Shown here in pieces: positions 28,191 to 48,736 of a DNA stretch of 50,918 bases (position 1 is its first letter; each line of letters starts with the position of its first letter). Under the pieces are notes generated by a model, which saw only the letters and a program-made list of their open reading frames with translations, made no database searches and was not told the origin of the DNA. Position numbers and translations under genes: made by a program. The DNA is taken from the sequence record NC_029020.1; one strand, written 5' to 3'.

Positions 28191-29246
28191 GTGCCAGTTA
28201 TGAAAGTAAAAGATGACATTTCCTGGTTTTTTGCGGGTCTGGGCTTAACCAGCATAGGGATGGCGTTTTTAGGAGACGGAAAACCGTATTTGTTGCCTNC
28301 CGCGTTCCTCATCGTCGCTCTAGGCATNCTNTCCATATTCGTAAGGCANAGANNTCTCGTNGTTACGGCTTTCGCTATCGCGACGGTTACAGCCGTAGTG
28401 AANATTATGACGGGGTTGCCCGTCCTTACTGATGAAGAAGCGATAATACTGTACGCGTCACAACTGTTCCTCCAGGGGAAGAACCCCTACCTCTACTCCA
28501 TGGCTGAGGCGTTTTCGATATATCATGTCCCGTTTAATGCTGTGACCGGCACAACCTCAAACTCGTTTATGCCGTCCGTCTACATTTACCCGCCGTTATC
28601 ATTCGTCAGCGTCGCGGTATTTCACAACCCCGAAACGGTGGACGTAATATCAGCCGTTATAGCCTTCACTTACTCCTTCCTCAAAAAACGCGAGAACCTT
28701 TTCCTCGGGTCTTTTTTCCTGTGGCCGGCACTTTCTTACGATTTCGCGACGGGACAGGAGCTGAACCTCGTCGCTTACTCCCTCGCGTTTATCGCGATAT
28801 TCAACGAGAGGTTCAGGTACTTATTCTTAGGAATATCCGCAGACGTAAAGCAGTTCGCCGTGCTGATAGCTATCCTCCTGGTTAAATTCGAGAGGCAGAA
28901 GCTCAGGAAGATAGCGGAGTTCGTGATACCGCTATTGGTCTCTTCGATTCCCTTCATTTCGAAGCAGTACTTCGCGTCCGTCATAACCATCACACAACCA
29001 GTCGCTCAACAAGGAGTCTCATTTTCTCTTCTTACCGCGTTCGGCTTACCTATCCCTTCATTCGTGTATACCGTGCTCCAGGTGGCTCTTTTGGCNTTAA
29101 TCCTAATATTNAATAATAAGAAGGAGCTGGCTTGGGGTCTCCCCGCATTAACGTGGATATTCTCTTATAGAGATCTGGGGTATTTTGCGTTTTATTTCGC
29201 NTTGCAATACGTAGTNTGGATGGCTGAGAAAGATGGAAAAGTTTGA
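28191..29246 (+). CDS. Polytopic GT-C-fold glycosyltransferase (GT87/DUF2029-like; GtrC analogue)
   Basis: Many TM helices; acidic loop motif LTDEEA..., GKNPY, YIYPPL. Confidence 0.7.
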   Translation: MPVMKVKDDISWFFAGLGLTSIGMAFLGDGKPYLLPXAFLIVALGXXSIFVRXRXLXVTAFAIATVTAVVXIMTGLPVLTDEEAIILYASQLFLQGKNPYLYSMAEAFSIYHVPFNAVTGTTSNSFMPSVYIYPPLSFVSVAVFHNPETVDVISAVIAFTYSFLKKRENLFLGSFFLWPALSYDFATGQELNLVAYSLAFIAIFNERFRYLFLGISADVKQFAVLIAILLVKFERQKLRKIAEFVIPLLVSSIPFISKQYFASVITITQPVAQQGVSFSLLTAFGLPIPSFVYTVLQVALLXLILIXNNKKELAWGLPALTWIFSYRDLGYFAFYFXLQYVXWMAEKDGKV

Positions 29247-29892
29247 ACTCGTTCTGACGCTGGCGGTTGTAATACCTTCTCTTTTCACGTTCTCCATTTT
29301 CTTCTATCATCCCCAGCTACACGCGAAGGTGTTGGGCTTTTATGATGTAGGGGAAATAAACAGGTACAACGTGGTAACGATCTGCTTGCAGAACCCTACC
29401 AACAAAACGTATGCATTGGTGCCAGTGATTGACAGCCATCGCTGGTACCCGAAAGTAATAGTCCTGAAACCTCACGAGAACATTATAGTCAACGTTACGG
29501 CACCAGACCCTACTATCGCTATTTCACAAAATTCTCCGTACNNGATTACTTTCTATTTGTACAACACGAAAACGGCCGTCTTGTCCGTAAGCGGGTTCGC
29601 CCCTGCAGGTACGATATATCCAATCATAAATCCTAACTTTACCGTGGTATACAACTCGTCGTACGGGATATCGGAGTACGGCTGGCAGATACTATACAGC
29701 GGGAATGTGACAGTACAGAAGGGGAAAATCACGGTAAGCGGGACTGCACTGATAGAGCAGACGTTATACTATCCGATAAACGGGAGCGTAACAGTGGTTC
29801 ATGACGGTGGGGAAGTAGAATGGTGGATATACGATAATACTCTGGTTATATACGCCCAAAACACCACGATATACTCCGTGGAGTACGTGTAG
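29233..29892 (+). CDS. Membrane-anchored beta-rich extracellular protein coupled to the GT-C gene
   Basis: N-terminal TM helix, NxT/S sequons, overlaps the upstream stop. Confidence 0.65.
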   Translation: MEKFELVLTLAVVIPSLFTFSIFFYHPQLHAKVLGFYDVGEINRYNVVTICLQNPTNKTYALVPVIDSHRWYPKVIVLKPHENIIVNVTAPDPTIAISQNSPYXITFYLYNTKTAVLSVSGFAPAGTIYPIINPNFTVVYNSSYGISEYGWQILYSGNVTVQKGKITVSGTALIEQTLYYPINGSVTVVHDGGEVEWWIYDNTLVIYAQNTTIYSVEYV

Positions 29893-29939
29893 CGAAGGTT
29901 TTTTAACATCTCCGCTATTCTTGCAATAGCTGACCTGTT

Positions 29940-30194
29940 GTGGAGGTACCTGTCGTTATATCTTATTCTAAGATCGAGGAGCTTTGTGAGTATGATGAAC
30001 ATGAAGGGATCGTATGCGATGACTTCAAAGGGTACATTGACGTCGATGTTGAGGAGGTAAAATTAAGCCAAGATGATTTAGAAAAAATTATGGACAAGTA
30101 CTTAGACGAAATTTCAGATATTTTGAAAATGGATAAACGCCTTTGGGAGAAACTGCAAANACNGNTGGACAAAANTNTAAATCTATATATCTAA
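29940..30194 (+). CDS. Small acidic hypothetical protein, 84 aa
   Basis: ORF track; D/E-rich. Confidence 0.55.
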   Translation: MEVPVVISYSKIEELCEYDEHEGIVCDDFKGYIDVDVEEVKLSQDDLEKIMDKYLDEISDILKMDKRLWEKLQXXXDKXXNLYI

Positions 30195-30207
30195 CAGAAT
30201 AATTGTT

Positions 30208-30882
30208 TTAACGCGGAATATTTATATTCATCCTAATGAATTGTAGGGCTTTTAATAGTTGCGTTTTCTTTTCGGTAACACATTTTCTGTAATATTCAGC
30301 GGTACATTTTTTCTCAATAGTATTCTCGTCGATGCCCAACTCGTTCACAAGTGCCTGGTATAACGACGTCCCCTTGATGCTACTGATCATAGTAGCCGTC
30401 CGGATTTGTATTTCCTTTAGCGTGCTCAGAACGGTGAGTACGTCGAACTCGTTGGGGTTGACTATTTTCGTCAGCACATCTATGAGGTACGAACTTTCGG
30501 CCACGAGTGCTTCCTCGTTGACGTAGAACAACGGTTTCTTGTTCGTGACGTCCAGAATTTTCGTCACCAGTGACTTAACGTCCTCGCCAGACGCATTCAT
30601 CACGATGAACATGATGTCGCACCCGATTTTCAGGATCTGCATCAGCTCGTCTTCGGACACCGCGTTTTCGTACCTTTTCAGGACTAATTCCTTCCACAGA
30701 TCCTCTATTTCGGTGTTGCTGTAATAGGTAAGAACCACAGTGGTCAACCTTTGTATACCTAAATTAGGGTGTGATATGCTGGTGCGATCCATACAGACCT
30801 CGCTGTAGACGATGAACTGGAACTGCTCTGGAGTGGGTACGTCGTTTTCTTTTCTCGTTCGTGGCATTATCAACCACCTCAT
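30208..30882 (-). CDS. Hypothetical helical protein, 224 aa
   Basis: ORF track; part of an overlapping minus-strand operon. Confidence 0.65.
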   Translation of the reverse strand: MRWLIMPRTRKENDVPTPEQFQFIVYSEVCMDRTSISHPNLGIQRLTTVVLTYYSNTEIEDLWKELVLKRYENAVSEDELMQILKIGCDIMFIVMNASGEDVKSLVTKILDVTNKKPLFYVNEEALVAESSYLIDVLTKIVNPNEFDVLTVLSTLKEIQIRTATMISSIKGTSLYQALVNELGIDENTIEKKCTAEYYRKCVTEKKTQLLKALQFIRMNINIPR

Positions 30883-31409
30883 TCTATATTGTACCAGTCA
30901 TCATTGCATGTAATACTATTTACATCATCTAAAACGGTTCTGTTACCTAAACATACCGCGACACGCTTACGGTCGGGCCGTTTCGCCTTCACCACAATGT
31001 ATTTATCGTAGTTGAACGTGAGACGCTTGAACCCTCCTATTTCGAACTCCAAAGCGTTCAATATGTACTCTCCGTCCTTATACTGTGCCTTTCGGTACGA
31101 GAAAACAAAATATTCAGAAGCCGACACCGAGCTCACCAATGCGAACTTCTTCAGGTCGATTTGTTTCTTTAGATAAACTATGTAGTTAATACCCTTTATC
31201 ATTACGTCCGTGATGAAGTAAATACCGGGATATGTTATCCTGTGCATCGACCTGTCAGGCGTTCCCATATCGAGATATAGGACATATTCGTTTTCGCTTT
31301 CGACCATTTTGTCTATTTTATTCTTGAACACGTTACGCAGGTAGTTGAATAGTACCACGTTTTTGCCTACGAGTGATTCCAAATACGAAAGGGACATCAG
31401 AATCCCCAC
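30879..31409 (-). CDS. Hypothetical protein, 176 aa
   Basis: ORF track; operonic overlap. Confidence 0.65.
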   Translation of the reverse strand: MGILMSLSYLESLVGKNVVLFNYLRNVFKNKIDKMVESENEYVLYLDMGTPDRSMHRITYPGIYFITDVMIKGINYIVYLKKQIDLKKFALVSSVSASEYFVFSYRKAQYKDGEYILNALEFEIGGFKRLTFNYDKYIVVKAKRPDRKRVAVCLGNRTVLDDVNSITCNDDWYNIE

Positions 31410-32023
31410 AGACCGAGGGATATTCGTTTGTTTATTGAAGCCAAGTAGTCCTTCCTCGTGACGCTTGTGAAGACGAAGTAATTGTTGAATGTAACTCCGA
31501 CGGCACCGAACGTATCGAACTCCTTCAAATAATTTGTAGGATCGTTGTCTTCGAACTTGTTTATGACGAAATAATTCGTCTCGCTATTATTAGCGTTGTT
31601 ATACCGCTCTAAGGTAAGCCATATCCACCTCGGGAATAGGAAGAACTTCCTTTTGGCATTAGCATTCGCTTTCAGGAAAACCTCTCTAACTACTTTAGCC
31701 CTCTTTCTTGCGAACTCTTGCGGAGAAATGTAAACCATCGCGAAATAAACTATCCTATTACTTGGATTGCCCTGGTTTATCTGCGTCGTCATCTTATAAT
31801 ACTGTTTTAGGAAGTCGGCGGGCAGATCCATCGCCACTTCGACGCCACTTGTTTCGGAATACATTATAGCGACATGCACCCCGTTTTTTTCTATTACCTT
31901 CGTTTTTTTATCGAGTTTCACCGTGACCGGAGGCAGAAACAGTAAGGCATCGTAAATCCTATAACCGTAACTGGCTTGCGACTCATTTTTATCAACTTTT
32001 TTCTTAAACAGTTTCAGGAACAT
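31397..32023 (-). CDS. Hypothetical basic protein, 208 aa
   Basis: ORF track; operonic overlap. Confidence 0.65.
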   Translation of the reverse strand: MFLKLFKKKVDKNESQASYGYRIYDALLFLPPVTVKLDKKTKVIEKNGVHVAIMYSETSGVEVAMDLPADFLKQYYKMTTQINQGNPSNRIVYFAMVYISPQEFARKRAKVVREVFLKANANAKRKFFLFPRWIWLTLERYNNANNSETNYFVINKFEDNDPTNYLKEFDTFGAVGVTFNNYFVFTSVTRKDYLASINKRISLGLWGF

Positions 32024-32037
32024 TTAATCCACCACCC

Positions 32038-32451
32038 TTAAGGAATGTAATACCCTTCGTCTTTACTACTGCCGAAGGAAATGTGTAGAACGTCGATCGC
32101 TAGTGCATATACAAAGTACGCTACGGCCAACGCGAGGACTGCTATACTGACGTATACCAGCACGGCACCGTCGGCACTGTAGGGCGTGATCCTGTATGTC
32201 ACATTGTACGGTGAAGTATACACCGGGTTGTACGTTATGTAAGGGGCGAGATATAGCGAAATTAGGGTAAAGCCTACTGAAAACGTCAGGAACGGGAGGG
32301 CAAGCCTCAGGTGGGTTAAACTACTGTTCCTCAGCATGAAAAGCTCGATTATCGTCATTATAAGAAAACCACCCGCCAGGTCGATAAGGTAGATCTGGGT
32401 GTAGGAAAATGGAGGTAGTGCATTTATCACGGTAGTGTTCACGTTCGCCAT
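32038..32451 (-). CDS. Small polytopic membrane protein, 137 aa
   Basis: Three hydrophobic helices. Confidence 0.7.
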   Translation of the reverse strand: MANVNTTVINALPPFSYTQIYLIDLAGGFLIMTIIELFMLRNSSLTHLRLALPFLTFSVGFTLISLYLAPYITYNPVYTSPYNVTYRITPYSADGAVLVYVSIAVLALAVAYFVYALAIDVLHISFGSSKDEGYYIP

Positions 32452-32457
32452 ATCTCC

Positions 32458-32745
32458 TTAGACCTCCTCGCCGTCCTCGCACAGCTCCTTTTCGTTCACG
32501 ATTTCTTCAATCGTAGTACCATTTCTGATTTTGTTCGTGATCTCTCTCATGGCGACGAGCAAAGCTATAATCGAATATTCTGGTTTCTTCACTTCTTCGA
32601 TCGTTCCGTCGTCCTTTTCTATCCAGTATCCTTTCTGTATAAGGTATTCAGAGGACAACATCTCTGGGAAGTCATCGTCGTATTTGCTTATTATTTGGGT
32701 CAGATTCTCATATGCTTTCATAAGAGTTCTGCAGTCTGGTCTCAC
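32458..32745 (-). CDS. Hypothetical acidic protein, 95 aa
   Basis: ORF track; GTG start. Confidence 0.55.
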   Translation of the reverse strand: MRPDCRTLMKAYENLTQIISKYDDDFPEMLSSEYLIQKGYWIEKDDGTIEEVKKPEYSIIALLVAMREITNKIRNGTTIEEIVNEKELCEDGEEV

Positions 32746-32831
32746 GTCTTTAATCTTCCGCGAGAAGGCTTAAAAATAAGCGAGAAGTGCCCGCTTCTTA
32801 ATCAGCTGTTTAAGGGCAGGGCAGTTTATTT

Positions 32832-32904
32832 CTAACTCGCCAGCTTACGCTGGATCTCGACTGCATCCTTCAGTTGGGTGTATTGTATTATCCTATCCAA
32901 CTTC
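32832..32904. repeat. 73-bp exact copy of the integrase 3' end (direct repeat, copy 1)
   Basis: CTAACTCGCC...CCTATCCAACTTC, identical to 34362-34434. Confidence 0.97.
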
Positions 32905-32959
32905 AGGTTTTAGGATCCTGCTCTTTTGCATAACTGGTTAGGCAAAAATTAATTTTCCT

Positions 32960-33268
32960 TCAGCCCAAAACGGTTATGTCGACTTTTATAGGGAATACCA
33001 TATAAAAGCCGAAAAAGTCGTAGAAAAATATCCAGAACAGTTCACCATTCATGATAATACTGCCTAACATAATCATGTCTCCTTCGGCCCAGTAATCTGG
33101 GACGATCCCGTTTATCGAGTCCCTATCAACTTTTATATGGAAATATTTCAAGATTTCCAATAGAATGTTAGGGTCTTTAGATTTGATATAAGTACTCAGG
33201 ATTTCTTTCAACTTTTCATCCGTTACCCTATTTATTATTTTCATGGCTTCTTCCGTGTTTCTGTCCAT
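32960..33268 (-). CDS. Hypothetical protein, 102 aa (cargo between the 73-bp repeats)
   Basis: ORF track. Confidence 0.6.
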   Translation of the reverse strand: MDRNTEEAMKIINRVTDEKLKEILSTYIKSKDPNILLEILKYFHIKVDRDSINGIVPDYWAEGDMIMLGSIIMNGELFWIFFYDFFGFYMVFPIKVDITVLG

Positions 33269-33326
33269 TTATGTCCACCAGTTCTTGATATGAATAACAT
33301 CTTTTTTATATCTTTCGTTTCGGTAT

Positions 33327-33806
33327 TTGGCACCCATTTCATTTAAATTTATTAGTGTTTCGATATATCGGTTGGTAATGAGGGACTTAACCGACGAAGA
33401 AATACTGAAAATCATGTGCTCGATTGTACCGATATACATTGAGGGTCAACGGCACACCGTTATTATGTACCTAACTGGGTGGTTATATAAGGCAGGAATA
33501 AGCTACAGGTCTGCTAAAAAACTCGTTAAATTAATATGTGAGACGTTTAATGACGGAGAATGCGATGACAGGATATATACATTAGATAGGACTTACGGGT
33601 ATAGGGGGACTCAACCGCAGAAATATAAACTAAAAACCAAAAGCGGGATATACGAACTCCTCGTCGAGGCGTTAAAAGATGAAGAAAAAGCAAAAAGAAT
33701 AATAAGGAAATTGGAGAATATACTCAGTTATAGACCGAAAAGCGTAACGTTATTTGATGTTTTCCCGAAAAAACAGAGTGAGGTGAACATGAATGAGAAT
33801 ATCTGA
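33327..33806 (+). CDS. Stand-alone primase-accessory helical domain (PriCT-1 / pRN1 helix-bundle-like); likely start ATG 33378
   Basis: EGQRHTVIMYLTGWLYKAGIS...DDRIYTLDRTY fits the remembered G.R....L.G.L.K.G...R...L..TY pattern; no AEP catalytic domain. Confidence 0.55.
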   Translation: MAPISFKFISVSIYRLVMRDLTDEEILKIMCSIVPIYIEGQRHTVIMYLTGWLYKAGISYRSAKKLVKLICETFNDGECDDRIYTLDRTYGYRGTQPQKYKLKTKSGIYELLVEALKDEEKAKRIIRKLENILSYRPKSVTLFDVFPKKQSEVNMNENI

Positions 33807-34320
33807 TTTCTTTTCCGAGTACCGTGATAAGCACCCGCTTTATCACTATGTCGTTTCGTCATGGATAAGGTCGAACCCAGGGACGTTTATAGATATAATG
33901 AAAAGGTATAAGGATTGGATATGGTTGAAAGGGAAGCCAGTATTCGTCCAGATGGAATGGCGTCACCCTAATACATTAATGTTCTACGACGTTTATATGA
34001 AAGTTTGGGCACCATACAGGAATATTCCCAATAAATTCAGATACTACCACGTTTTTATAGAAATAAAAACTGGTAAATATAATGATAACTGGGTAACTCA
34101 ATTGAGAAAGCAATATCATAACAGGAAGAGTAGTAAGCTTGGGACTAGATTTGACGATTACCCTCAACTCTTGTTTATAGCTAAGAAATCAGAAATCTCT
34201 AAATTAAAACAAGAACTAGGTAGTTATCCTACTGGTTTCCTTTTATTTTTCGAATTGGATTATATAAAACCCTATATTCAGCGTGACTTGAAATCGCTCT
34301 TATACAAAAAGCTAAGCTAG
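33793..34320 (+). CDS. PD-(D/E)xK restriction-endonuclease-like nuclease
   Basis: FYDVY...VFIEIKTG followed by helix WVTQLRKQY. Confidence 0.6.
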   Translation: MRISDFFSEYRDKHPLYHYVVSSWIRSNPGTFIDIMKRYKDWIWLKGKPVFVQMEWRHPNTLMFYDVYMKVWAPYRNIPNKFRYYHVFIEIKTGKYNDNWVTQLRKQYHNRKSSKLGTRFDDYPQLLFIAKKSEISKLKQELGSYPTGFLLFFELDYIKPYIQRDLKSLLYKKLS

Positions 34321-34361
34321 CTTGACACAAATAACCACCTAGCCTCTTACATAATTTAAGC

Positions 34362-34434
34362 CTAACTCGCCAGCTTACGCTGGATCTCGACTGCATCCTT
34401 CAGTTGGGTGTATTGTATTATCCTATCCAACTTC
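34362..34434. repeat. 73-bp direct repeat, copy 2 (last 73 nt of int, including the catalytic Tyr codon and the stop)
   Basis: Identical to 32832-32904. Confidence 0.97.
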
Positions 34435-35093
34435 TTGTGGCCAGTTACCTTTGCAATGATCGCAGGGTCTGTACCACTCTTTGAGAGAAAGCTGATTAGT
34501 GCATATCGTAGTGAGTGGGTAGTACATTTCAAGTATTTTTTAGCGAACATCCTTATCCTAGCTTTTAAATCGTAGTCGGAAATCGTTAATACGAATCTGT
34601 ACGATTGTTTATTTCTTATGATACTCGGGATGATGAAGAACTTCATATTGCCTTTTTTCTCTGCCTGGAGCTGGAACTCCCTCTGCCCCGACTCCACGAA
34701 CGTCTTGAAAGCCCTGATTGCTTCGCCTATTCTTGAACCGTTAACCAGCTGTATGAGGAGGATCGCGACGTAAGCCTCGTAGGGCATCAGGTTTAGGTCG
34801 TATAACTGTTTGTAGGCTTCCGTGAGAACTTTCTTGGCCTCGAGGAAATCGACTGAATCATCCCAGGTGTGTTCTATCCTCCTCTTTCCCACTGGCTTTA
34901 AAACTTTCTTGAGTATCTCGCTTTCTTCCCTCTTTCTTTCCTTTTCTTCCTTCGGCTTCAGCCCTAGCTTTACGGCAATCATATCAATAATGTCAGTCCA
35001 GTTCTTCTCCCTGGCTTCCTGTAAATACTCTAAAAGTTTAGGGGAGTTATCGGGAAGATTCAAGATAATTTGTTTAAGCTCCTCTTTATCCAT
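34362..35093 (-). CDS. int: Tyrosine recombinase / integrase
   Basis: Catalytic residues: GSRIGEA (R), HSLR (H-x-x-R), TGH (H), IIQYT (Y). Confidence 0.93.
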   Translation of the reverse strand: MDKEELKQIILNLPDNSPKLLEYLQEAREKNWTDIIDMIAVKLGLKPKEEKERKREESEILKKVLKPVGKRRIEHTWDDSVDFLEAKKVLTEAYKQLYDLNLMPYEAYVAILLIQLVNGSRIGEAIRAFKTFVESGQREFQLQAEKKGNMKFFIIPSIIRNKQSYRFVLTISDYDLKARIRMFAKKYLKCTTHSLRYALISFLSKSGTDPAIIAKVTGHKKLDRIIQYTQLKDAVEIQRKLAS

Positions 35094-35212
35094 TTCTCTT
35101 CAACCTCCAAAATTGAATTTTGCTCCTATCAGATTGCCTTATCTCTCCTGGGGTTGACATTTCTCTTTTTCCCGTTATATCCTCAGAAAGAGAAATATAA
35201 AAACTTCACGGC

Positions 35213-35238
35213 GTTTCTCTTAGACCCGTAAGAGAAAC
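35213..35238. terminator. Perfect 10-bp stem-loop downstream of 35248..35541
   Basis: GTTTCTCTTA-GACCCG-TAAGAGAAAC. Confidence 0.5.
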
Positions 35239-35247
35239 AAAATTAGG

Positions 35248-35541
35248 TCAATTGGCTTTTCTACTTCCCATTGCTTTCTCTGCAAATTTTTCGGCTATAT
35301 TCACAATCAACATAACAAGAACCATTAGAAAGGAATCTATAATCAATTGAACCTCTAGGAAAATGCCGACTGAATTTAATCGAATTGAATTAGATATTAC
35401 TTTAGTGTAGATGTTGTTTATATATATCAAATTGACGATTTCTATTATAAAAATTAATACAGCCGAACCCCGCATGATAAGGAGGTTTCTCTTACTTCTT
35501 TTATCTTCTTGATCCGAAAGAGGATTAGGGGATTGAGACAT
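35248..35541 (-). CDS. Small two-TM membrane protein under the conserved promoter cassette
   Basis: 97 aa, two hydrophobic helices. Confidence 0.65.
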   Translation of the reverse strand: MSQSPNPLSDQEDKRSKRNLLIMRGSAVLIFIIEIVNLIYINNIYTKVISNSIRLNSVGIFLEVQLIIDSFLMVLVMLIVNIAEKFAEKAMGSRKAN

Positions 35542-35569
35542 TTTACTCGAGATATCTCTTTGATGAACT

Positions 35570-35622
35570 GATATTTAAGCTTTCTGCCTGACTGGTAAGG
35601 TAGAAAAAAGGCTATTGGCTTT
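35570..35622 (-). promoter_or_regulatory. Conserved promoter cassette A (palindromic operator plus BRE/TATA)
   Basis: Minus strand ...CCTTACCAGTCAGGCAGAAAGCTTAAATATC; 53 bp identical to 36897-36949. Confidence 0.85.
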
Positions 35623-35631
35623 TACCATCAC

Positions 35632-36423
35632 TTAGAATGTTAATGTGCTACACAATGGGCATTTGTAAGTCCTCCCGAAACGTTTCAAGTATTCCTCAGG
35701 ATCCTTTTGAATATCTCGGAAGTATATCCTTTGGTGGTTGTAAAATAACCCCGACCCTCCTTTCCTCAGCTTAGCCTCAGCCTCTACGAACTTTTGGAAG
35801 AACTCTGGGTTCTTTAACGCTAGCACTGCAAAATCTGCTGGTGTCTTGTAAGCAGAGCACCAACAATCGTAAGCTTTTCCGTAAATGTCATAAAGTGGGT
35901 TCTTCTTCAGACCGTTAACCTTTATGTACTCCTCTACATCTTTTTCTGAAAATTCGAAAATAGGAGCATACGTATAAACTTGGAATTTGGGGTGTAAATA
36001 AAATTTCACGGCACGGCTTTTCATCCAACTCTCGTCCTTTCTTACTCCCGTGATAAGGACTATTTCCTCTTTATCCTTGCCCTTCAAGAAGTCTTGTAGA
36101 GGCTCTAGTTTGAGGTAATGTTTACACCACCTCTTTGTCAGTGTAGGGAAACCTATCTTGTTCACCAACTCAAAATAGTTGTATTTGGGCCCTATAATGG
36201 TAAGCTCAATGCCCAACTCTTTAGTCACTTCTTTTACGTAATCCAATAACCCTGGTGTTGCGATACCCGTGTTAATGAATAATGCCTTTGTCTTTTCAGG
36301 ATAAATGGAGTGCGTCAAGTGTAGTGTCACCAATGAGTCTTTGCCACCGCTGAACATGACATAGATTTCTTTAAACCCGAGTAGGATCTTCTTAGCCTCT
36401 TCCTTAACTGCTAGCAGATCCAT
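35632..36423 (-). CDS. PAPS reductase / DndC-like adenine-nucleotide alpha-hydrolase family protein
   Basis: PP-loop FSGGKDS, WCKHYLKLEP, ITGVRKDES, YDCWC, C-terminal CPLC. Confidence 0.88.
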   Translation of the reverse strand: MDLLAVKEEAKKILLGFKEIYVMFSGGKDSLVTLHLTHSIYPEKTKALFINTGIATPGLLDYVKEVTKELGIELTIIGPKYNYFELVNKIGFPTLTKRWCKHYLKLEPLQDFLKGKDKEEIVLITGVRKDESWMKSRAVKFYLHPKFQVYTYAPIFEFSEKDVEEYIKVNGLKKNPLYDIYGKAYDCWCSAYKTPADFAVLALKNPEFFQKFVEAEAKLRKGGSGLFYNHQRIYFRDIQKDPEEYLKRFGRTYKCPLCSTLTF

Positions 36424-36865: not shown

Positions 36866-36877
36866 TTGATCCCGCGA

Positions 36878-41170: not shown

Positions 41171-41737
41171 ATGCAGGCTAAACCAAGTTACATAGACCCG
41201 ACCTCAATAAATAAGCTTTTCGGTCAAGCTCCTTTCAGGTCTGAAAAGGTCGCCAAGATATTTGAGNTNCTNAGCCTGGGCAGACCGATGTTAGCGAGGG
41301 ATCTGGCAGAGGCAATTAACGTCCCTTCGAAGCAGATCCTGCCGAGGCTGAAGAGGTACATCCAGAGGGGATGGGTCGCCGTCCAGAAGGTAAACAACAT
41401 CAACATCTATTCCCTCACCGAGACGGCCAGGAANATATTGAAGCTACAGGGCAGTTTCGANAAGGTAAGGGAGAAGGCCGAGAAGGTCTTAGGGAGGAAG
41501 CTGGAAAGCGACGAGCTGGAGATCCTGAAGTTCTTCTATAAGGAGCAGAGGTACATAGAGAACTCTCCGAATGAGACGATTGCAGAGCAGGTGTGGCACT
41601 CCGTCGGGATGAAGATCCCCTTGTCAAGGGTACAGGAAATACTAACCGAGTTCACGCTGAGAGGGATCCTGTTCGCCTTCAGGCTGAAGAACGGGCAGAT
41701 CTTGAAGGTGAGGCTGAACAGNAACCTCCTTCTCTAG
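41171..41737 (+). CDS. Tandem winged-helix DNA-binding protein
   Basis: ARDLAEAINVPSKQILPRLKRYIQRGWV...YSLT plus a second wHTH-like half (LSRVQEILTEFTLRGIL). Confidence 0.75.
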   Translation: MQAKPSYIDPTSINKLFGQAPFRSEKVAKIFEXXSLGRPMLARDLAEAINVPSKQILPRLKRYIQRGWVAVQKVNNINIYSLTETARXILKLQGSFXKVREKAEKVLGRKLESDELEILKFFYKEQRYIENSPNETIAEQVWHSVGMKIPLSRVQEILTEFTLRGILFAFRLKNGQILKVRLNXNLLL

Positions 41738-42158
41738 CTAAAGAAGGGCTAATGGACGCCTAATTCTATACACCATTTTTCTCAATTTAGTAATAAAAAT
41801 TCTAAGCAACGTACCTTCCCGCCGTAAATTGTAAAAGCCTGCTTTACGGCGAAAGTAATTATTTGTATAAAGCCCGCGNTCTANCGGCGTAAATNCAAAA
41901 TNCNCTAAAAGGAGATATATTATAATTACTACTACCCCGCTTTTNGCGACCGCTANGCGTGCNGGCCGGCGTTCTTTTGGTGCCGTTGGTTTTACGCGTT
42001 TTTACGGAGACTAGCTTACACTGTTGTTAGACTAATTGAGTTTTTNCTTTTACAGCNGGAGAAATTATTTGGTAGGGTAATGCGTAGTGTGAGCGGGCTT
42101 TACTACCTGCTTATACTAATTGCCTGTATGCTCGCTATATTCCGGTCAGACCTCACAA

Positions 42159-42240
42159 CTCTCCAGTAGTAGTTATTGCAAGCGGTTTGCCGGATTGACT
42201 GGAGATCGTCAAACCGTCTGGCCCTCAAACAGCCGTTTAA
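42159..42240 (+). repeat. ori-like element 1 upstream of Rep
   Basis: 21-bp CTCTCCAGTAGTAGTTATTGC, hairpin CGGTTTG..CAAACCG, then TCAAACAGCCGT; homologous to 43378-43457. Confidence 0.85.
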
Positions 42241-42289
42241 CTGATCTAAAACACATTAACGTTATTAAACCCTAAAACCGACATAGATT

Positions 42290-43159
42290 ATGGTAGGGGA
42301 TCATATTATGACACGGACACGTTTCACTGACGAAAGAATGGCCAAAGAATCTCTCCTTAAGAGTAAAATGGCACTTGAAAACGCCTTCAAACGTTATAAA
42401 GATGCCATCATGGTTACCCTGACGGTGTCACATATATTCCCACTAGTAATTCCTTTAGAAGTTAATGGCCAGAGTATTAGCTATATTCCCCTTCAGGACT
42501 CAATAGTTTCAAATCTGAAGAATTACCTATTGGNCTGGNNNAGNNAAATGTGGAAAGACCGCAAAATTGAGACATTCACAGCTTACGAATATCACGAGGA
42601 TTACAATTTATACCTTCACACCATAATTTTTGGTATTCCTTGTCTCATCGATTGGTCTAAAAAATTCGGTAAGAAAAAGGAAGACGCATTAACCTATTAC
42701 GCCCGGAAGTACAATATCCCCTTACCTCCTGACGCCGAAAAGACCCTAATTTCCAAATCCGTTCTCACCGTGTTATCAGACAAATGGCTCATGAAAATTT
42801 TGGCAAAATTTGACTCAGTACTCAACACTAATCTATTAATGGGTTACATAAACTACAAGATGAAATATAATTTACAAGGGCCAACGATTGAGATATATAA
42901 GATTAAGGACGGTCAGTGGGATGGCACGCCTCCTAGCGACGCCGTTATTCAATATTCAGGTGATGTTAAATATAAAAAAGTTTTATCGCCAGAAGAATAT
43001 GTTACCAAAAATATACTCAGAATCTATAGCATGTTAAGAGGAGGAGGTGGAAGAATAGACGAAGAAGACCAAGCAAAAACCATTGGCTATTGGTTATTCG
43101 GAAAACGATTTAATTCCTATTCCCTCTCTTTGTTGTCACAGGAAAAAGGCACCACTTAA
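42290..43159 (+). CDS. HUH-superfamily rolling-circle replication initiator (Rep), possibly degenerate
   Basis: Motif 1 MVTLTV, motif 2 YEYHEDYNLYLHTIIFG (first His appears as Tyr), motif 3 EEYVTK, C-terminal YWLFGKRFNSYS. Confidence 0.7.
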   Translation: MVGDHIMTRTRFTDERMAKESLLKSKMALENAFKRYKDAIMVTLTVSHIFPLVIPLEVNGQSISYIPLQDSIVSNLKNYLLXWXXXMWKDRKIETFTAYEYHEDYNLYLHTIIFGIPCLIDWSKKFGKKKEDALTYYARKYNIPLPPDAEKTLISKSVLTVLSDKWLMKILAKFDSVLNTNLLMGYINYKMKYNLQGPTIEIYKIKDGQWDGTPPSDAVIQYSGDVKYKKVLSPEEYVTKNILRIYSMLRGGGGRIDEEDQAKTIGYWLFGKRFNSYSLSLLSQEKGTT

Positions 43160-43377
43160 ACTTTCGTAATATTTTTGAACTAACATTTGACTAATTAAAT
43201 TCAGGAAACTTATAAATTTTCCACGATATATTTATGGAAGAACAACATTTGTCATTCGGTGTTTACTTTTACTTGTAGGGAAATTTTTGCGGAAGGATAT
43301 GCGGAGGGGAAACAAAAGGGGATAAGGCTTTGCTATTTGTTTGTATACCTGTTACCTATAGCACGATATTCTCCACT

Positions 43378-43457
43378 CTCTCCAGTAGTAGTTATTGCGG
43401 GTAGTTGGTCGGCCTGACAGGGGATTGGGTTAACCACACGTCAAACAGCCGTATAAC
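43378..43457 (+). repeat. ori-like element 2 downstream of Rep, same orientation as element 1
   Basis: Identical 21-bp CTCTCCAGTAGTAGTTATTGC, similar core (CGG..TGAC.GG.GAT), then TCAAACAGCCGT. Confidence 0.85.
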
Positions 43458-43613
43458 GGTTGGATATTGACTTCCTTCCAGCTCTGAAGGGCGGTGTAGT
43501 TAACTCGAGCTGAACCGCGTTATTGTGTTGGACGCATGCTCCCTCAAACAGCCGTTTGAGGACAGCACAATGGTTGGCGGACAGTCCCAACCTCAAAAAA
43601 CGAAATCCTCTTT

Positions 43614-44165
43614 TCACATTTCAGACCACATCCCAGTCGCCATTAGAATGTAGATTACGCTCATTGCCTCCCCGAACGACGCCAAGACGCCGACAATTAA
43701 TGCCAAGTCATTCGCGAACAGTTGTAGCGGAGGAGCGAGGAACGGTAATGATACTCTCTGCGTCATAGGCAATAGGATCACGTAGACATACAGTGCAATG
43801 CTTTCAAAGCTGTTGAAAATGAACTGAAGCACTAAGTAAATGAAGATTATCTGGAGTGTGCCCATTGTCTGCTGTGACAGGTTCAGGACATAATTCCTTA
43901 CAAACAACGCACCGATGGTAGTGATCCCTCCTAACATTGCTCCAGCTATTACGCCGTTACTACCGAACAGCTTTCCTAAAAGAGACTCCAAATATAACGG
44001 TAGGTTTAACGACATCAAATACGATATATAATGTGCAACTTGGGTATCCGTCGAATACGCATTTAAGTTAACGATGGTTCCCAGTATATAGACGAAAATA
44101 GACGAATACATTATACCCTCATTAATCCTGTAAAAGACAGTGGCGAGCGACCCAATGAGACCCAT
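43614..44165 (-). CDS. Polytopic membrane protein, 183 aa
   Basis: Four to five hydrophobic helices. Confidence 0.7.
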   Translation of the reverse strand: MGLIGSLATVFYRINEGIMYSSIFVYILGTIVNLNAYSTDTQVAHYISYLMSLNLPLYLESLLGKLFGSNGVIAGAMLGGITTIGALFVRNYVLNLSQQTMGTLQIIFIYLVLQFIFNSFESIALYVYVILLPMTQRVSLPFLAPPLQLFANDLALIVGVLASFGEAMSVIYILMATGMWSEM

Positions 44166-44187
44166 AAAAAAGACTTTGAACCTTGGA

Positions 44188-44382
44188 TTAAAAAACCTGG
44201 CTTTCGGACGACTTGAGACGGAGTGGGTTCCCAGGGGTTTTTGTCAGACAGTTTCCATTAAGATAAGACTCGATGGCTTCCCTGACTACATCGCTCCTCG
44301 ACATCCAATTGTTCATGGCGAACAGATCGAGTTCTTTCAATAAATGTTCGGGGAGCTTGACCGTTACGACCTTCATTTTCAT
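44188..44382 (-). CDS. CopG-like ribbon-helix-helix regulator
   Basis: KVVTVKLPEHLLKELD...SRSDVVREAIESYL. Confidence 0.88.
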   Translation of the reverse strand: MKMKVVTVKLPEHLLKELDLFAMNNWMSRSDVVREAIESYLNGNCLTKTPGNPLRLKSSESQVF

Positions 44383-44696
44383 TTGTGATCACCTGTTGGC
44401 TCTTTTTCGACTACCGAATAGATGCGGAATAAATTGGCTCCAATTTTTTGATTTAAAAACGATAGCGTCTCCAAGACCTTTTTTGCTTGCCAATTGTTTT
44501 TCAGAGCTATATCTGATCTAAGAGATCGCACCATGGATGACAATCTGCTGACGTCCTCCTCCAGCTCCCTGAAGATCTCCTGGATCTCCAACTCATTCAT
44601 TCCTCCTCGCCCCTCCCCTCCGATCGTTTCAGAAAAAAGGGCGGTGACTTTTTCATTTCCCTTGGGGAAGTTACCCACAGTAACCATTTTCCTCAA
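44379..44696 (-). CDS. SSV1 D63-like helical-hairpin protein (core probably starts at ATG 44600)
   Basis: EIFRELEEDVSRLSSMVRSLRSD...QKIGANLFRI versus remembered D63 [23 protein letters not shown]...QKIEAELYQL. Confidence 0.65.
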   Translation of the reverse strand: MRKMVTVGNFPKGNEKVTALFSETIGGEGRGGMNELEIQEIFRELEEDVSRLSSMVRSLRSDIALKNNWQAKKVLETLSFLNQKIGANLFRIYSVVEKEPTGDHK

Positions 44697-44714
44697 TGAA
44701 TTTTACGGTCGGTA

Positions 44715-44762
44715 TAGATATTTAAAGCTTCTGCCTGCCTAGTAAGGCAGAAAACTTAAATA
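44715..44762. promoter_or_regulatory. Symmetric divergent promoter cassette D
   Basis: TATTTAA-AGC-TTCTGCCT-GCCTAGTA-AGGCAGAA-AAC-TTAAATA, a two-fold symmetric operator with a TATA box on each side. Confidence 0.85.
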
Positions 44763-44775
44763 CCAGCTTGCTCAA

Positions 44776-45360
44776 ATGATTACTTGGTCAAAAATGTCCC
44801 AGGCCCAACACCCCAAAGACGAGGAGATTTATGAAGTGCTGAAGAAAGAAGGGTTGGAGGATCTTTACGATCTCATAATGAAATACAAAGATGTGGCGGA
44901 ACCACTTTTGAAGGAAATATTATCAAACAAGGACGAAGTAAAGAACATGATCGATACTTTGAAGAAAGAAGGGTTGGAAGATTTTTTAAAGGATGTAATC
45001 ATGGCTTATAACCCCAGAGCCATATTCGAACGGATTATTAAAACAAAACACGCATTAAAGAGGATTATAGACAAGTATGAGCAGGGCAACAATAAGGTAG
45101 CTTTTGATAAAGCCAATAATAAGAATACGATCGTCGCTATCAAATTCAGAACTCCAGAAGAAATGGAGGAATTCAATCGATTAGCCATTGAAATGGATGA
45201 CCTTAGAAATGGAAAAGAGCCCGAAGCCTTGGAAATGACATACGAAGAATTCGCTCAAAGGTTCAAACCGAGAATGATATGGTATAAAAGAATAGGGAGC
45301 GAGAAAGAGGGTACTTATTCTNCTTTGATGGGAGGTTACAGATTTGACGAAGAATTATAA
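44776..45360 (+). CDS. Hypothetical acidic helical protein with an internal 40-aa-spaced repeat
   Basis: LKKEGLED occurs twice; identical 19-bp DNA at 44840 and 44960. Confidence 0.7.
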   Translation: MITWSKMSQAQHPKDEEIYEVLKKEGLEDLYDLIMKYKDVAEPLLKEILSNKDEVKNMIDTLKKEGLEDFLKDVIMAYNPRAIFERIIKTKHALKRIIDKYEQGNNKVAFDKANNKNTIVAIKFRTPEEMEEFNRLAIEMDDLRNGKEPEALEMTYEEFAQRFKPRMIWYKRIGSEKEGTYSXLMGGYRFDEEL

Positions 45361-45758
45361 GGTCGTAATTTTACNTATACCATTTATTNATGACNNGGAT
45401 GTATTAATCGCTTCAAAGCTGTACGAAAAACGTCTACTCCCCTTTCGTTCAGTGATNATGAAGATCTCCTGCCAAGAGGATTGATCATATTCATTCCCAG
45501 NTAGAAAAACTATTTTTCTTTATCTTAGTCCATTTCGCCCNGAGACGNGCNCTTACTTCTTCTGCTGAGACTGCGTGGGCNTGCGTGGGACTCCCTGCTT
45601 CTGCCTCCTTCTTCCGTGGCCTATTTCGTGGACTCCCAAGAATCAGTCTTAACTAAAAGGAAAGGGTAAATTAAAAACGCCTCCGTCCCTTCATTGGTAG
45701 GGGATGAGGTCTACTATTTTTATTGATGTAATTCTAAGTCCAATGTGGGAGATCGTAA

Positions 45759-45899
45759 ATGAGAGACAAGGAGAGGTGGGAGGAAGAAATAAAATACATG
45801 AAAGTACATAAGTACACAATGATAGCCCTTGTAATTCTGCTAGATGCAGTAATAAGAATAAAAACGATTCTTAGAAAAATACTCGTAAAACTAAGCTGA
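45759..45899 (+). CDS. Possible 46-aa small protein with one hydrophobic helix (below the ORF-track cutoff)
   Basis: MRDKERWEEEIKYMKVHKYTMIALVILLDAVIRIKTILRKILVKLS*, read by eye. Confidence 0.35.
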   Translation: MRDKERWEEEIKYMKVHKYTMIALVILLDAVIRIKTILRKILVKLS

Positions 45900-46233
45900 T
45901 TTCCTCCAACGGACGCGGTTTCTAGTGATGAATAATGAAAGTGAATAAACACACAATATCAGCCCTCGAAGTTTTGTTTTCTGTAATAACGGGAATAAAC
46001 TCCAAGCAGATGATAGTAACCGATAACAATCAAGAAAGTAGAGATGGTATGAGCCCCGAGGAAAGGAGTGNNATCATAATAGGGCTTATTATAGCCCTTA
46101 TTGCTTGTGCTATAGTTTGTTACCTNCNTATTACNAANCAAATCGTCTGTGCACCAAACACAATTTGAATCGGTTCTACGCTTAAATGATTTCCGACCGA
46201 AATCTATATTAGTNNNAGTTAGAGGCTAATCTT

Positions 46234-46512
46234 ATGAAAGTAGTGACGAAAAAAGAATCACCAACAAAGTTCCTGTTCAACGCGATGACCAGNGACGAAT
46301 ATGAAAAAGCTAAGAGGTTCCATGAGTTTCTCAAAAACATCTCTAAAGGNNCGCACGGTTACCTAACGATCGAATGGGANGATCTCATNGATATGNCATC
46401 NGGCTTCTTGAAGACCACGCCATATGATGCATATCGGATTCTGATGAAGATGAAGGANTACGGCTGGATCAAGGAAATCGACAGGCATTTTATTATCGTT
46501 AACACCGATTGA
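46234..46512 (+). CDS. Small protein with a wHTH-like C-terminus
   Basis: TPYDAYRILMKMK.YGWIKEI. Confidence 0.55.
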   Translation: MKVVTKKESPTKFLFNAMTXDEYEKAKRFHEFLKNISKXXHGYLTIEWXDLXDMXXGFLKTTPYDAYRILMKMKXYGWIKEIDRHFIIVNTD

Positions 46513-46515
46513 AAC

Positions 46516-46981
46516 TCACTCTTTAAGCCCAGGCAAGATTTTACTTCTAACTATTGAATATCTACCGTATTCCGGGTACTTCTTGTAGACGTAGTTCAGG
46601 ATCTCCGTCCTGCTCTTCCTAACCCATTCTCTGAAGAACGCCTCGATCTCCTTATCCTCTTCACTTGGCGTAAACTCACTCGTTAAGACGTAATGCCACT
46701 TGTACGTCTATTACTTCTCCGCTCAGCGGATCCCTTACTTCCTCCTCTTCCTCGATATCGACCTCTCCTATTTCAATCAGTTTATCGATAAAGTTTTGTA
46801 GTTTTGAGGAGTAAGGGCCGAAGAACCAGGGTTTAAATTCTAGTCCTAAATCAATTCCTTTCTCCTTCTCAAGTAAAAAGAAAATCTTCTGAAGCTTAGT
46901 CGCAGTTACCTCCGTGCTCTCCTCTTTAGCGGTGTAAAGCAATAACTTAATTAAGCGATAAATTCTGTCCTCAATTATCAT
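46516..46981 (-). CDS. Panacea/SocA (DUF4065)-like antitoxin-family protein (~154 aa); one apparent frameshift at ~46712
   Basis: TKLQKIFFLL, FKPWFFGPYS; the shifted frame continues TYKWHYVLT...EILNYVYKKYPEY...KE* to TGA at 46518-46516. Confidence 0.65.
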
Positions 46982-47043
46982 GGCCGATTACCCTTAATTA
47001 ATACTAATGCTGTTAAAATGTGGAGAAAAAAGTATTAACTGAA

Positions 47044-47442
47044 TTAAATTGGAGGTGGGGCTTGCTGGGGAGCCTGGTTGGTAGTTTCTTGGACTTGTAC
47101 TGGCTGGGCCTCCTTCTTGGCTTTCCTTTCCTTCCTCCCGTCTTCGGGAAGGTACTCTCTGATCAGTTTCGCTACATCATCAAGCTCTGACTTCTTCTGC
47201 ATCCAGACCTTGAGGAGTTCTAGCAACTGCTTTCCCTTTTCGGTTATATAGTATAGACCATCCTTGCTCTCTACGAGGCCCAATTTCATGAGTTCTTTGA
47301 GATAGTTGTCCGTTAGATCGTATGAGAGATTGGCCCTGTACATCACCCAGGTCTTCCTTGACCCGTTCTGGCATTGATCCAAAACGTTTTGTATTATTTC
47401 ATACTTGCTTCTTTTTTTCCTTCTGAGTTTAACCTGGCTCAC
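47044..47442 (-). CDS. Archaeal winged-helix transcription factor (HTH_45-like)
   Basis: RSKYEII..VL...KTWVMYRANLSY....YLKELMKLGLV...YYITEKG. Confidence 0.88.
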   Translation of the reverse strand: MSQVKLRRKKRSKYEIIQNVLDQCQNGSRKTWVMYRANLSYDLTDNYLKELMKLGLVESKDGLYYITEKGKQLLELLKVWMQKKSELDDVAKLIREYLPEDGRKERKAKKEAQPVQVQETTNQAPQQAPPPI

Positions 47443-47590
47443 GAATACAGTTGAAATCTATCTGTTATTTAAATTTTAGCTGGCACTGAGGGAGACAAAA
47501 TGCGTTCTTTCAGACGTTTAGTAATTCTCAGATCTCAGGGTTAAAGTTCGAGATTTCGCCTTGGAAGGTTAGGAAGCTTTTAAGCCATAA

Positions 47591-48049
47591 ATGAAAGTTA
47601 TAATCGTGGGTTTACGGATTTTAAAGTTCATGGTAGTGGGAGGCTTGGGGACTTTAGTCAATGAAGGAGTTTTCGTACTTGCAGTACGCGAAATGCCTAT
47701 TTTCTTCTCCTTGGGCCTCGCGATAGAGCTTTCCATATTGTTTAATTTTGTACTGAATGACGTCTGGACTTTTAGGGATAGAAGGGCTGGAAGCTTCGTT
47801 AGACGATTGTTGAAATTCCATTTGTCTTCCTTTAGTGGCGGAGTTGTTCAGTATATTGTGGTTATCGCATTACTAATCATGTTCCTCGGTTTGCCCAGCA
47901 TTTCCGAAATCATTTCCTTAATATTCTTCTCTCACCTCGAGGCCCAATCGATGTTCCTCGCTGTTATCAATTTCATAGGGATCCTTTCGGGCTTCATTAT
48001 AAGGTACTTGACTAGCCTAAGATATGTATGGGTGCTACGTAATGGCTAA
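47591..48049 (+). CDS. gtrA: GtrA-family lipid-linked sugar flippase-like membrane protein
   Basis: LKFMVVGGLGTLVNEG...SILFNFVLNDVWTFRD...KFHLSS. Confidence 0.85.
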   Translation: MKVIIVGLRILKFMVVGGLGTLVNEGVFVLAVREMPIFFSLGLAIELSILFNFVLNDVWTFRDRRAGSFVRRLLKFHLSSFSGGVVQYIVVIALLIMFLGLPSISEIISLIFFSHLEAQSMFLAVINFIGILSGFIIRYLTSLRYVWVLRNG

Positions 48050-48736
48050 GATATCTATCGTAATCCAACCTATAACGAAAGGGACAACGCAGNCCTGCTA
48101 ATTGAGCAGATAGCTAAGTTACTTCCCATGTCTCACATAATTGTAGTAGACGATAATAGTCCAGACGGCACTGCAGAAGCTCTGAGGATCTTGAANATTC
48201 CTAATCTGACCGTTTTCGTAAGGAATGAAAGGGGCTTAGGATCTGCCATAAGATTCGGGATAAAAAAGGCATTAGATGCAGGGAGCGAATTCATCGTAAC
48301 GATGGACGCTGACCTGAGCCACGATCCGGCTTACTTACCTCAGATGACTAAAACAGCTGTTGAAGGCAAATACGATTTAGTCGTGGGCTCGAGGTATATT
48401 AAAGGCGGTGGGATAGAAAACTGGCCGTTAAGCAGGAGAATCATAAGCAGAGGTGCAAATCTCTTATTTAGGTTACTTTCTAATTCCCCTCTGCACGACA
48501 ACACGTCGAACTACAGGGTTTACTCACGCAGGGCAGGAGAGCTGGCGTTAGATTGCGAAACGGCCAACGGCTATGAGTTCCAGATCTGCTCGGTTTTCAA
48601 AATCCTCAAATCCGGCCTAAGAGTGACGGAATACCCTATAATTTTCAAAGACAGAAGGTTCGGAAAAAGCAAGCTCGGAATTTCCGAAATATTGAAATGG
48701 TTCTCCTACGTTGTTAAGCTCTCACTCTCTTCTTAA
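48042..48736 (+). CDS. GT2 polyprenol-phosphate glycosyltransferase (DPM1/GtrB-like); frameshift near the start
   Basis: ISIVI/PTYNERDN, IVVDDNSPDGT, MDADLSHDP, VVGSRY, SNYRVY, EYPIIFKDR..GKSK. Confidence 0.9.

Follow-up and report, generated by a model that had tools for sequence, protein, structure and literature searches.

The stretch of DNA analysed here (the window, 50,918 bp) comprises the entire circular genome of Sulfolobus monocaudavirus SMV2 (100% identity to KP238129.1/NC_029020.1), a hot-spring archaeal virus classified in the Bicaudaviridae whose sequence was assembled from a Yellowstone metagenome. Three of its genes are at issue, all on the plus strand: an open reading frame (ORF) for a multi-pass membrane protein of 351 amino acids (28191..29246), and an overlapping pair composed of a GtrA-like membrane protein (47591..48049) and a DPM1-like family 2 glycosyltransferase, or GT2 (48042..48736). 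A sequence-only reading of the same DNA had taken them together for a split version of the gtrABC glycosylation system of bacterial phages. In the following, locus A denotes the ORFs between 27417 and 29892, with the large membrane protein at their centre, and locus B denotes the pair (47591-48736). None of the three genes is a chance ORF.

A predicted GT-C glycosyltransferase at locus A

Homologues of ORF 28191 are labelled as membrane protein, transporter or SecF in the public records. Three independent lines of evidence, from sequence, structure and a conserved motif, instead support its placement in the GT-C superfamily, with GT87 as the nearest family. A word-index homologue search recovered close SMV-type relatives only, none of them with Pfam domains, and PDB-sequence searches with the protein and with two family profiles gave nothing meaningful (chance dehydrogenase matches, E about 1). 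A HMMER scan of 1.8 billion representatives, in turn, found cellular relatives with E-values from 5e-9 to 1e-5, aligned over nearly the full length. Among these cellular proteins there are borderline Pfam matches to GT87 (24.9 bits, cut-off 25), ALG3 (23.4 bits, cut-off 23.6) and PIG-M, and NCBI gives one of them the name 'glycosyltransferase 87 family'. A hidden Markov model built from viral sequences alone (SMV2, SMV1, YNP2, ATV and close metagenomic members) gave 76-104 bits for four proteins annotated with PF09594, compared with a maximum of 7 bits among 880 shuffled decoys. These scores show the predicted protein to be homologous to the GT87 (PF09594) family, a relationship that is not the same as membership under the curated threshold.

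The AlphaFold2 model of the protein (pLDDT 86.4, pTM 0.89) points in the same direction. Its top six Foldseek matches in the PDB are PimE, PIGU, ALG3, ALG6, again PimE, and AftB (TMq 0.36-0.48, probability 0.41-1.00); everything below them falls to TMq <=0.19, which we regard as noise, and transporters lie at TM-scores of 0.1-0.2. Both ALG6 and PIGU are listed as structural relatives in the paper describing PimE (PMC12041525). The third line is a set of residues, Asp81 and the loop G96-x-N98-P99-Y100 (Gly96, Asn98, Pro99 and Tyr100), which are invariant in 29 viral and cellular sequences. In the model, helix 81-94, the one that comes next after the N-terminal transmembrane segment(s), begins with Asp81, and the catalytic Asp of PimE (D58) likewise occupies the tip of the first juxtamembrane helix, as do those of ALG6, ArnT and PglB (PMC12041525). 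By the positive-inside rule the loop carrying Asp81 would face outward.

The proposal that ORF 28191 encodes a GT-C membrane transferase, which the absence of a GT-C fold would have refuted, is thus supported, since the GT-C fold, the GT87 profile link and the placement of Asp81 all agree with it. That the protein is a transporter or a secretion component, as the depositors' 'putative transporter' (SMV1) and 'SecF' (YNP2) would have it, we find barely credible: those annotations are all that speaks for it, and set against them are the lack of any Pfam, NCBIfam or PDB sequence support for such a function, the exclusively GT-C-fold matches above the structural noise, and the profile link to GT87. 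No close Sulfolobales homologue of the gene was found in the searches that were run and, unlike the two genes of the pair, it does not look like a recent capture from a host.

The overlapping pair at locus B

The first gene of the pair encodes a free-standing protein of 152 amino acids that matches PF04138 (GtrA_DPMS_TM; E=4.8e-20, 72.3 bits with a cut-off of 26.1) over profile positions 1-117 of 117. Hydropathy peaks indicate about four transmembrane helices, which align to TMH1-4 of chain 5mlz_A, the dolichyl-phosphate mannose synthase (DPMS) of P. furiosus; the alignment covers the transmembrane domain of that enzyme (residues 255-373, E=1.5e-17). Asn248, Asn277, Phe338 and Arg341 of 5mlz_A correspond in the alignment to N24, N52, F135 and R138, and these pocket and gate residues are invariant in SMV2, SMV1 and YNP2. 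According to a recent study (PMC12992685, 2026), type-III DPMS is defined by motifs, flipped dolichyl-phosphate (Dol-P) mannose has been seen bound in its transmembrane domain, and classical GtrA proteins are without the polar-pocket and gate features of this domain. In PHROGs the SMV2 protein falls in an archaeal-virus phrog and in none of the phage GtrA type. We read it as what is specifically, judging from these alignments, a free-standing copy of the type-III DPMS transmembrane domain, and as a candidate membrane partner and/or Dol-P-hexose flippase. GenBank and RefSeq omit this ORF; listed in its place are an antisense ORF of 55 amino acids (47654-47821, minus strand) and a C-terminal fragment (47879-48049, plus strand).

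The closest cellular counterparts are stand-alone chromosomal genes, one in a metagenome-assembled genome (MAG) of Acidianus hospitalis (71% identity) and one in a Saccharolobus MAG (51%). In A. hospitalis the gene is flanked by an aminotransferase gene and by tRNA-synthetase-related genes, a housekeeping context with no GT2 within 6 kb; the Saccharolobus ORF layout is near-identical and likewise has no GT2 match nearby. Seven of the ten inner branches of the GtrA-like tree are unresolved, and the number of captures is not settled by the tree. One viral copy on an IMG/VR contig (3300005861_000260; L006 10001-10441) appears to be a mosaic, SMV1-like in its C-terminal half but nearly identical to the A. 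hospitalis chromosomal copy in its N-terminal half, as would be expected if viral and host copies had recombined.

The second gene starts with an ATG at 48042 and overlaps the stop codon of the GtrA-like gene (48047-48049) by 8 nucleotides. The sequence-only reading had given the coordinates of the pair correctly, and the annotation of the GT2 was already public; what that reading missed is that the frame opened by this ATG stops after 19 codons and that the GT2 domain lies in the next frame (48050-48736). In the searches the pieces on either side of the break were treated separately and not read through, PF00535 being matched by the piece 48050-48733 (E=1e-25). We place a single-base frame break at about 48060..48070 from the reading of the sequence, the N-termini of homologues and an alignment to the SMV2-like metagenomic contig L096. 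Intact homologues have 231 amino acids and start with M-[AT]-[KN]-I-S-I-[VI]-I-P-T-Y-N-E, a segment that spans the break site. The contig L096, collinear with SMV2 and 80% identical to it, carries the overlapping pair too; its GT2 is intact, with 237 amino acids, and at the break site the contig has one base more than the SMV2 record.

A programmed frameshift was rejected at this position, since the sequence lacks a slippery heptamer and a relative with the intact gene is known. In view of these two points, and because the SMV2 record contains 295 N and several genes broken relative to their homologues (gp15/gp16 and a DnaA-like gene, described below), the break more likely stems from an error of assembly or from a lesion particular to this strain; between these two we do not distinguish. 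Since the same pair is intact in L096, it is real and maintained in the SMV2 viral lineage.

The GT2 aligns to the remainder of the P. furiosus enzyme, that is the catalytic domain and interface helices (5mlz_A residues 30-246, E=1.2e-28), and its other PDB matches are ArnC and the GtrB of Synechocystis (sll0501). In PHROGs it matches the 'GtrB-like' phrog_841 (E=2.5e-50) at profile positions 9-225 of 309 only; positions 226-309 are unmatched, and the protein has neither a transmembrane helix nor a C-terminal hydrophobic segment. Three of the Dol-P phosphate ligands of type-III DPMS, Arg117 (SRY), Arg131 and Ser135, are kept. Because the protein has DADLSHDP instead of 89-DADxQHPP-96 and a Gln (GYEFQI) at the position of Lys178, it would stand outside type-III DPMS and belong to a Sulfolobales DPM1-like type, all Sulfolobales orthologues examined having either DADLSHDP or DADFSHDP. 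Its identity is 82% to a 231-residue 'polyprenol monophosphomannose synthase' of a Saccharolobus MAG, 69% to the S. islandicus protein and ~64% to those of Acidianus. In the host, housekeeping genes surround the orthologue, and no GtrA-like gene occurs closer than 6 kb. We conclude that the GT2 is probably a polyprenyl-phosphate hexose synthase and, because of its family and the naming of the host orthologues, that the hexose is probably mannose.

Since both proteins match a single solved chain (5mlz_A, 30-246 for the GT2 and 255-373 for the GtrA-like protein), the pair can be read as a putative split and order-swapped Dol-P-hexose synthase. Each of the two genes closely matches a Sulfolobales chromosomal gene that has no partner nearby; hence both were captured from hosts and then joined by the virus, from unlinked loci, into an overlapping pair.

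A second case of this kind is seen in YNP2 (20811-21960, equal to L004 3274-4423), where catalytic and transmembrane genes are parted by a stop, a 13-nucleotide spacer and a frame change. The order is opposite to that of SMV2, with the catalytic gene first as in native DPMS. The YNP2 GT2 has only 37-40% identity to its SMV2 counterpart, scores 179.6 bits to 5mlz, has DADLQHPP and keeps the Lys; by these features it is a true type-III catalytic domain, and the YNP2 pair represents a naturally occurring division of an enzyme that has been described as a monomer. The difference between the two GT2 proteins (the identity of 37-40% and the true type-III character) indicates that the YNP2 pair was assembled independently of the SMV2 pair. 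Two independent juxtapositions argue that synthase and transmembrane protein would work together.

Proposed glycosylation route and its weighing

Taken together, these data make it on balance probable that SMV2 encodes parts of a Dol-P-hexose-dependent glycosylation route of the outer face, at two loci of different origin. The central GT-C protein of locus A would add a single sugar from a polyprenyl-phosphate sugar to an extracytoplasmic acceptor, Asp81 serving as the catalytic base. GT-C enzymes of the GT87/PimE, ALG3 and ALG6 types move one sugar from a polyprenyl-phosphate sugar on the extracytoplasmic side of the membrane. Locus B would be an accessory cassette, in which the GT2, lacking transmembrane segments, makes Dol-P-hexose (most likely Dol-P-mannose) at the cytoplasmic face, and the free-standing transmembrane protein anchors the GT2 and/or moves its product to the outer leaflet. 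During infection the cassette would in this way increase or safeguard the supply of donor to the viral GT-C protein. We read it as an accessory donor-supply module because the GT-C gene occurs in many relatives without the cassette. What has been established are the identities and folds, the motifs, the origins and the distributions; the nature of the sugar, its flipping, the feeding of locus A by locus B and the acceptor are inferred. Both S. acidocaldarius and S. solfataricus have been reported to contain hexose-charged Dol-P (PMC11407970).

Several observations weigh against this route. The protein of ORF 28191 itself has no match in Pfam, NCBIfam or the PDB sequences, and passes no curated family threshold. 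The E-values of its Foldseek matches are weak (0.08-1.1) and the TM-scores below 0.5, which makes the structural line insufficient when taken alone, and one of the matches, PIGU, is a non-transferase of the same fold, so that catalysis is not proven by the fold. With regard to locus B, the GT2 reaches no NCBIfam equivalog threshold (the nearest models, all of them polyprenyl-P transferases, stay below their cut-offs), and the DADLSHDP and Gln substitutions noted above concern donor- and phosphate-binding positions. The broken GT2 frame in the SMV2 record may mean that the pair is dead in the SMV2 genome itself. The two loci are also far apart: between the pair and the GT-C gene there are ~18.3 kb, or ~29.8 kb when measured in the other direction around the circle, and no operon links them.

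The distribution among relatives adds to these points. GT-C homologues are present in every sequenced relative searched (SMV1, SMV3, SMV4, YNP1, YNP2 and ATV, where the gene is ORF545), whereas the GtrA-like gene is confined to a subset of these viruses and the GT2 to YNP2 and SMV2-like viruses. SMV3, SMV4, YNP1 and ATV carry the GT-C gene without a viral GT2 or GtrA-like gene, and therefore the GT-C protein appears independent of locus B.

The same phyletic patterns, together with the distance of ~18.3 kb, would fit an arrangement in which the two loci are unrelated. The pair would then be an auxiliary metabolic cassette that serves the Dol-P-hexose pool of the host, for virion N-glycosylation run by the host, and the GT-C protein either a morphogenesis or membrane protein working with host donors or a non-catalytic protein resembling PIGU, which is among the fold matches (PMC12041525). 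In SMV1-like genomes, moreover, the GtrA-like gene occurs alone, with no viral GT2, directly upstream of a gene for a secreted, sequon-bearing, anchored surface protein of 757 amino acids, which also suits such an arrangement. The invariance of Asp81 and of the G-x-N-P-Y loop across viral and GT87-annotated cellular relatives, however, argues for catalysis that has been kept, and enzymes of the GT87 type use just the product predicted for the cassette. We regard unrelated loci as unlikely.

Neighbourhood of the GT-C gene and candidate acceptors

If SMV2 does encode such an outer-face route, its acceptor may be looked for near the GT-C gene. Downstream, and overlapping the GT-C stop by 14 nucleotides, ORF 29233..29892 (plus strand) encodes a single-pass, predicted all-beta protein of 219 amino acids with one N-terminal transmembrane helix. 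It has seven N-X-S/T sequons in its 219 residues, the highest density in the genome (z=3.5 against shuffles), and the same two-gene arrangement of GT-C and ORF 29233 is found in YNP2. The protein is a candidate partner or acceptor of the GT-C protein; its AlphaFold2 model, made from four close sequences, is poor (pLDDT 47). The sequence-only reading had named sequon-rich virion proteins as possible substrates. For the large structural proteins this did not hold, as their many sequons are no more than composition predicts (z about 1); the exception is the small protein of ORF 29233, which does show such an enrichment and may or may not be part of the virion.

In ATV, ORF545 (L095 3653-5290) combines the GT-C part, an extra C-terminal transmembrane helix and a sequon-rich beta-type tail in one polypeptide. 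We considered whether ORF 29233 is a detached C-terminal domain of the GT-C protein and rejected it; neither blastp nor hhalign (probability 0.3) shows homology between it and the ORF545 tail, and the likeness of ORF545 to a fusion of the two SMV2 proteins is one of architecture only.

Upstream of the GT-C gene, ORF 27417..28187 (plus strand) has no Pfam match and falls in phrog_20158; it is co-oriented and ends 3 nucleotides from the GT-C start, and the two are probably in the same transcription unit. The divergent neighbour of this block is a MoxR-type AAA+ ATPase (25668..27428, minus strand; PF20030 with 1.2e-29, PF07728 with 1.9e-18). The MoxR/GT-C neighbourhood is kept in ATV (ORF618/ORF545), and in YNP2 a gene annotated as FtsH-like takes that position.

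Another candidate acceptor is encoded at 17710..19978 on the minus strand, where a secreted, sequon-bearing and C-terminally anchored protein is split into gp16 and gp15, with a frame change between them. The pieces are collinear with the SMV1 protein of 757 amino acids (73% and 81% identity, blastp) and hold 13 sequons together. The SMV1 protein has a signal peptide, a long sequon-bearing ectodomain and a C-terminal membrane anchor. These features also ruled out a separate idea, namely that this large transmembrane protein, encoded beside the GtrA-like gene in SMV1, is a second GT-C enzyme.

The gene neighbourhood makes us favour as the acceptor glycoproteins of the virus, in its membrane proteins or its virion, or else the N-glycans that these already bear, with the host S-layer as the alternative. 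A bolder version of the route would have the GT-C protein and Dol-P-hexose carried in the lipid-containing virion, with the transmembrane protein as a Dol-P-mannose flippase acting in trans; glycosylation of virion proteins would there continue outside the cell and aid the energy-independent growth and stabilisation of the extracellular tail, which are a hallmark of this virus group. GT-C enzymes need no nucleotide donor, and extracellular glycosylation is for this reason conceivable, yet we hold this version to be very unlikely.

Comparison with known systems

The logic of the phage gtrABC systems (Shigella SfX/SfV and Salmonella P22-like phages) is the same: a GT2 loads the carrier, a small PF04138 protein is the proposed flippase, a polytopic transferase acts outside, and all three are virus-encoded. 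On this model the SMV2 genes would alter host surface glycans (S-layer, pili) and thereby bring about seroconversion and superinfection exclusion, infected or lysogenic cells no longer adsorbing the virus itself or its relatives. Besides the three biochemical roles, which are all present, this model is favoured by a tyrosine-integrase gene in SMV2, which makes carrier or lysogenic states possible, by the abundant surface receptors to which SMV1 reportedly binds (PMC13437554), and by the finding that S. solfataricus is infected less when its surface glycosylation is reduced (PMC11407970). The genes are arranged differently, however. The phage genes are three adjacent and co-transcribed genes, whereas in SMV2 only the GtrA-like gene and the GT2 gene are adjacent, and no gtrABC-type cassette exists, beside the integrase or elsewhere. 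The GT-C gene differs from the serotype-specific morons that encode phage GtrC-type proteins: it is GT87-related, occurs in all sequenced relatives, lies in a MoxR/structural neighbourhood and is co-oriented with a gene for a viral membrane protein, unlike a variable moron, and the viral structure matches in BFVD include no phage GtrC-type similarity. The GT2 and the transmembrane protein are near-copies of host genes and would make the host's own donor. Phage GtrB has C-terminal transmembrane helices that the SMV2 GT2 is without, although its catalytic domain is of the same polyprenyl-phosphate type, and the phage systems serve hosts with lipopolysaccharide, in contrast to an archaeal host with an S-layer, where the carrier would be dolichol.

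We therefore retain from the gtrABC comparison the three predicted activities and their sequence of loading, flipping and transfer, and set aside the notion of a cassette and of membership in that family; a role in seroconversion and superinfection exclusion seems doubtful. Other glycosyltransferase families were not detectable among the annotated SMV2 proteins scanned.

The outer-face route proposed here for SMV2 has closer analogues among cellular enzymes. In the type-III DPMS of P. furiosus (PDB 5MLZ/9EP0) the GT2 domain is followed by the transmembrane domain in one polypeptide, whereas SMV2 has two ORFs with the transmembrane gene first. Mycobacterial Ppm1 and PimE (GT87) combine a polyprenyl-phosphate-mannose (PPM) synthase with a PPM-dependent GT-C enzyme and thus resemble the pairing in SMV2. 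ORF 28191 is closest to PimE in structure and most clearly related in sequence to proteins annotated as GT87, and its Asp is placed as in PimE; the identity to PimE is, however, only 13-16%, and its 351 amino acids are fewer than the 383 aligned-target residues. The acceptor of PimE is phosphatidylinositol mannoside, which Sulfolobales, to our knowledge, are not known to make.

Only one archaeal case has been described in which a sugar passes from Dol-P to a protein-bound N-glycan, that of AglD/AglR/AglS in Haloferax volcanii (PMC3871713; PMC11407970). AglD loads the sugar on a Dol-P of its own, AglR moves it to the outside and AglS adds the sugar, as in the mechanism proposed for SMV2, but the Haloferax system is cellular. 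AglR belongs to a different (Wzx/Rft1-like) class of proteins. In eukaryotes, DPM1 has no transmembrane segment and works with separate small membrane subunits (DPM2/3), much as would the SMV2 GT2, and ALG3, ALG6 and PIG-M are lumenal GT-C enzymes that use Dol-P-Man or Dol-P-Glc, ALG3 and ALG6 being among the fold matches of ORF 28191. The small partner in SMV2 is nevertheless of the DPMS-TM/GtrA type and not DPM2 or DPM3, and no assembly of a Dol-PP-oligosaccharide is implied.

Novelty and possible significance

Neither glycosylation genes of these viruses nor GT-C enzymes of archaeal viruses are the subject of any paper that we found in the searchable literature. Relative to that literature and to the public records, three points are new: the GT-C assignment, the recognition of the transmembrane gene as a free-standing type-III DPMS transmembrane domain, and the assembly of host genes into the pair, which happened independently in two viruses. 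If the assignment is confirmed, SMV1-4, YNP1/2 and ATV would each carry an outer-face glycosyltransferase of their own, which matters for how stable the virions are in hot acid, for the recognition of receptors and perhaps for the unusual morphogenesis.

The pairs may be informative beyond these viruses. Two viruses have independently placed a synthase beside a free-standing DPMS-type transmembrane domain that the host keeps apart from it, and this can be taken as natural genetic evidence for the transmembrane domain acting with the synthase in trans. The identity of the Dol-P-mannose flippase is a long-standing question, and in a crystallographic study of 2026 the DPMS transmembrane domain is proposed to flip Dol-P-mannose (PMC12992685). 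A stand-alone gene in tractable Sulfolobales and their viruses would offer a separable flippase candidate.

Other features of the genome

A DnaA-like replication gene (49294-50218) is present as two ORFs with many N-derived X residues, whereas L096 has a single ORF of 310 amino acids at the corresponding place; it may be further evidence that frame breaks in the SMV2 record are assembly artefacts. In the structural-gene region, a protein of 531 amino acids (4142-5737) shows weak matches to TPR repeats. TPR repeats also occur at the C-terminus of the long cellular GT-C relatives. A PAPS-reductase-domain protein is encoded at 35632-36423 on the minus strand and carries a PUA fusion in the GenBank annotation. 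On a host chromosome (L097 5547-6008) a PUA-domain gene is overlapped by the GT2 orthologue, and this coincidence is probably due to chance.

Divergently from the pair of locus B, a winged-helix regulator is encoded at 47044..47442 on the minus strand (PF14947, E=2.9e-25). The region 47400-47566, which covers the 5' end of the regulator gene and the start of the shared intergenic region of 148 nucleotides, has 71% identity to YNP2 DNA.

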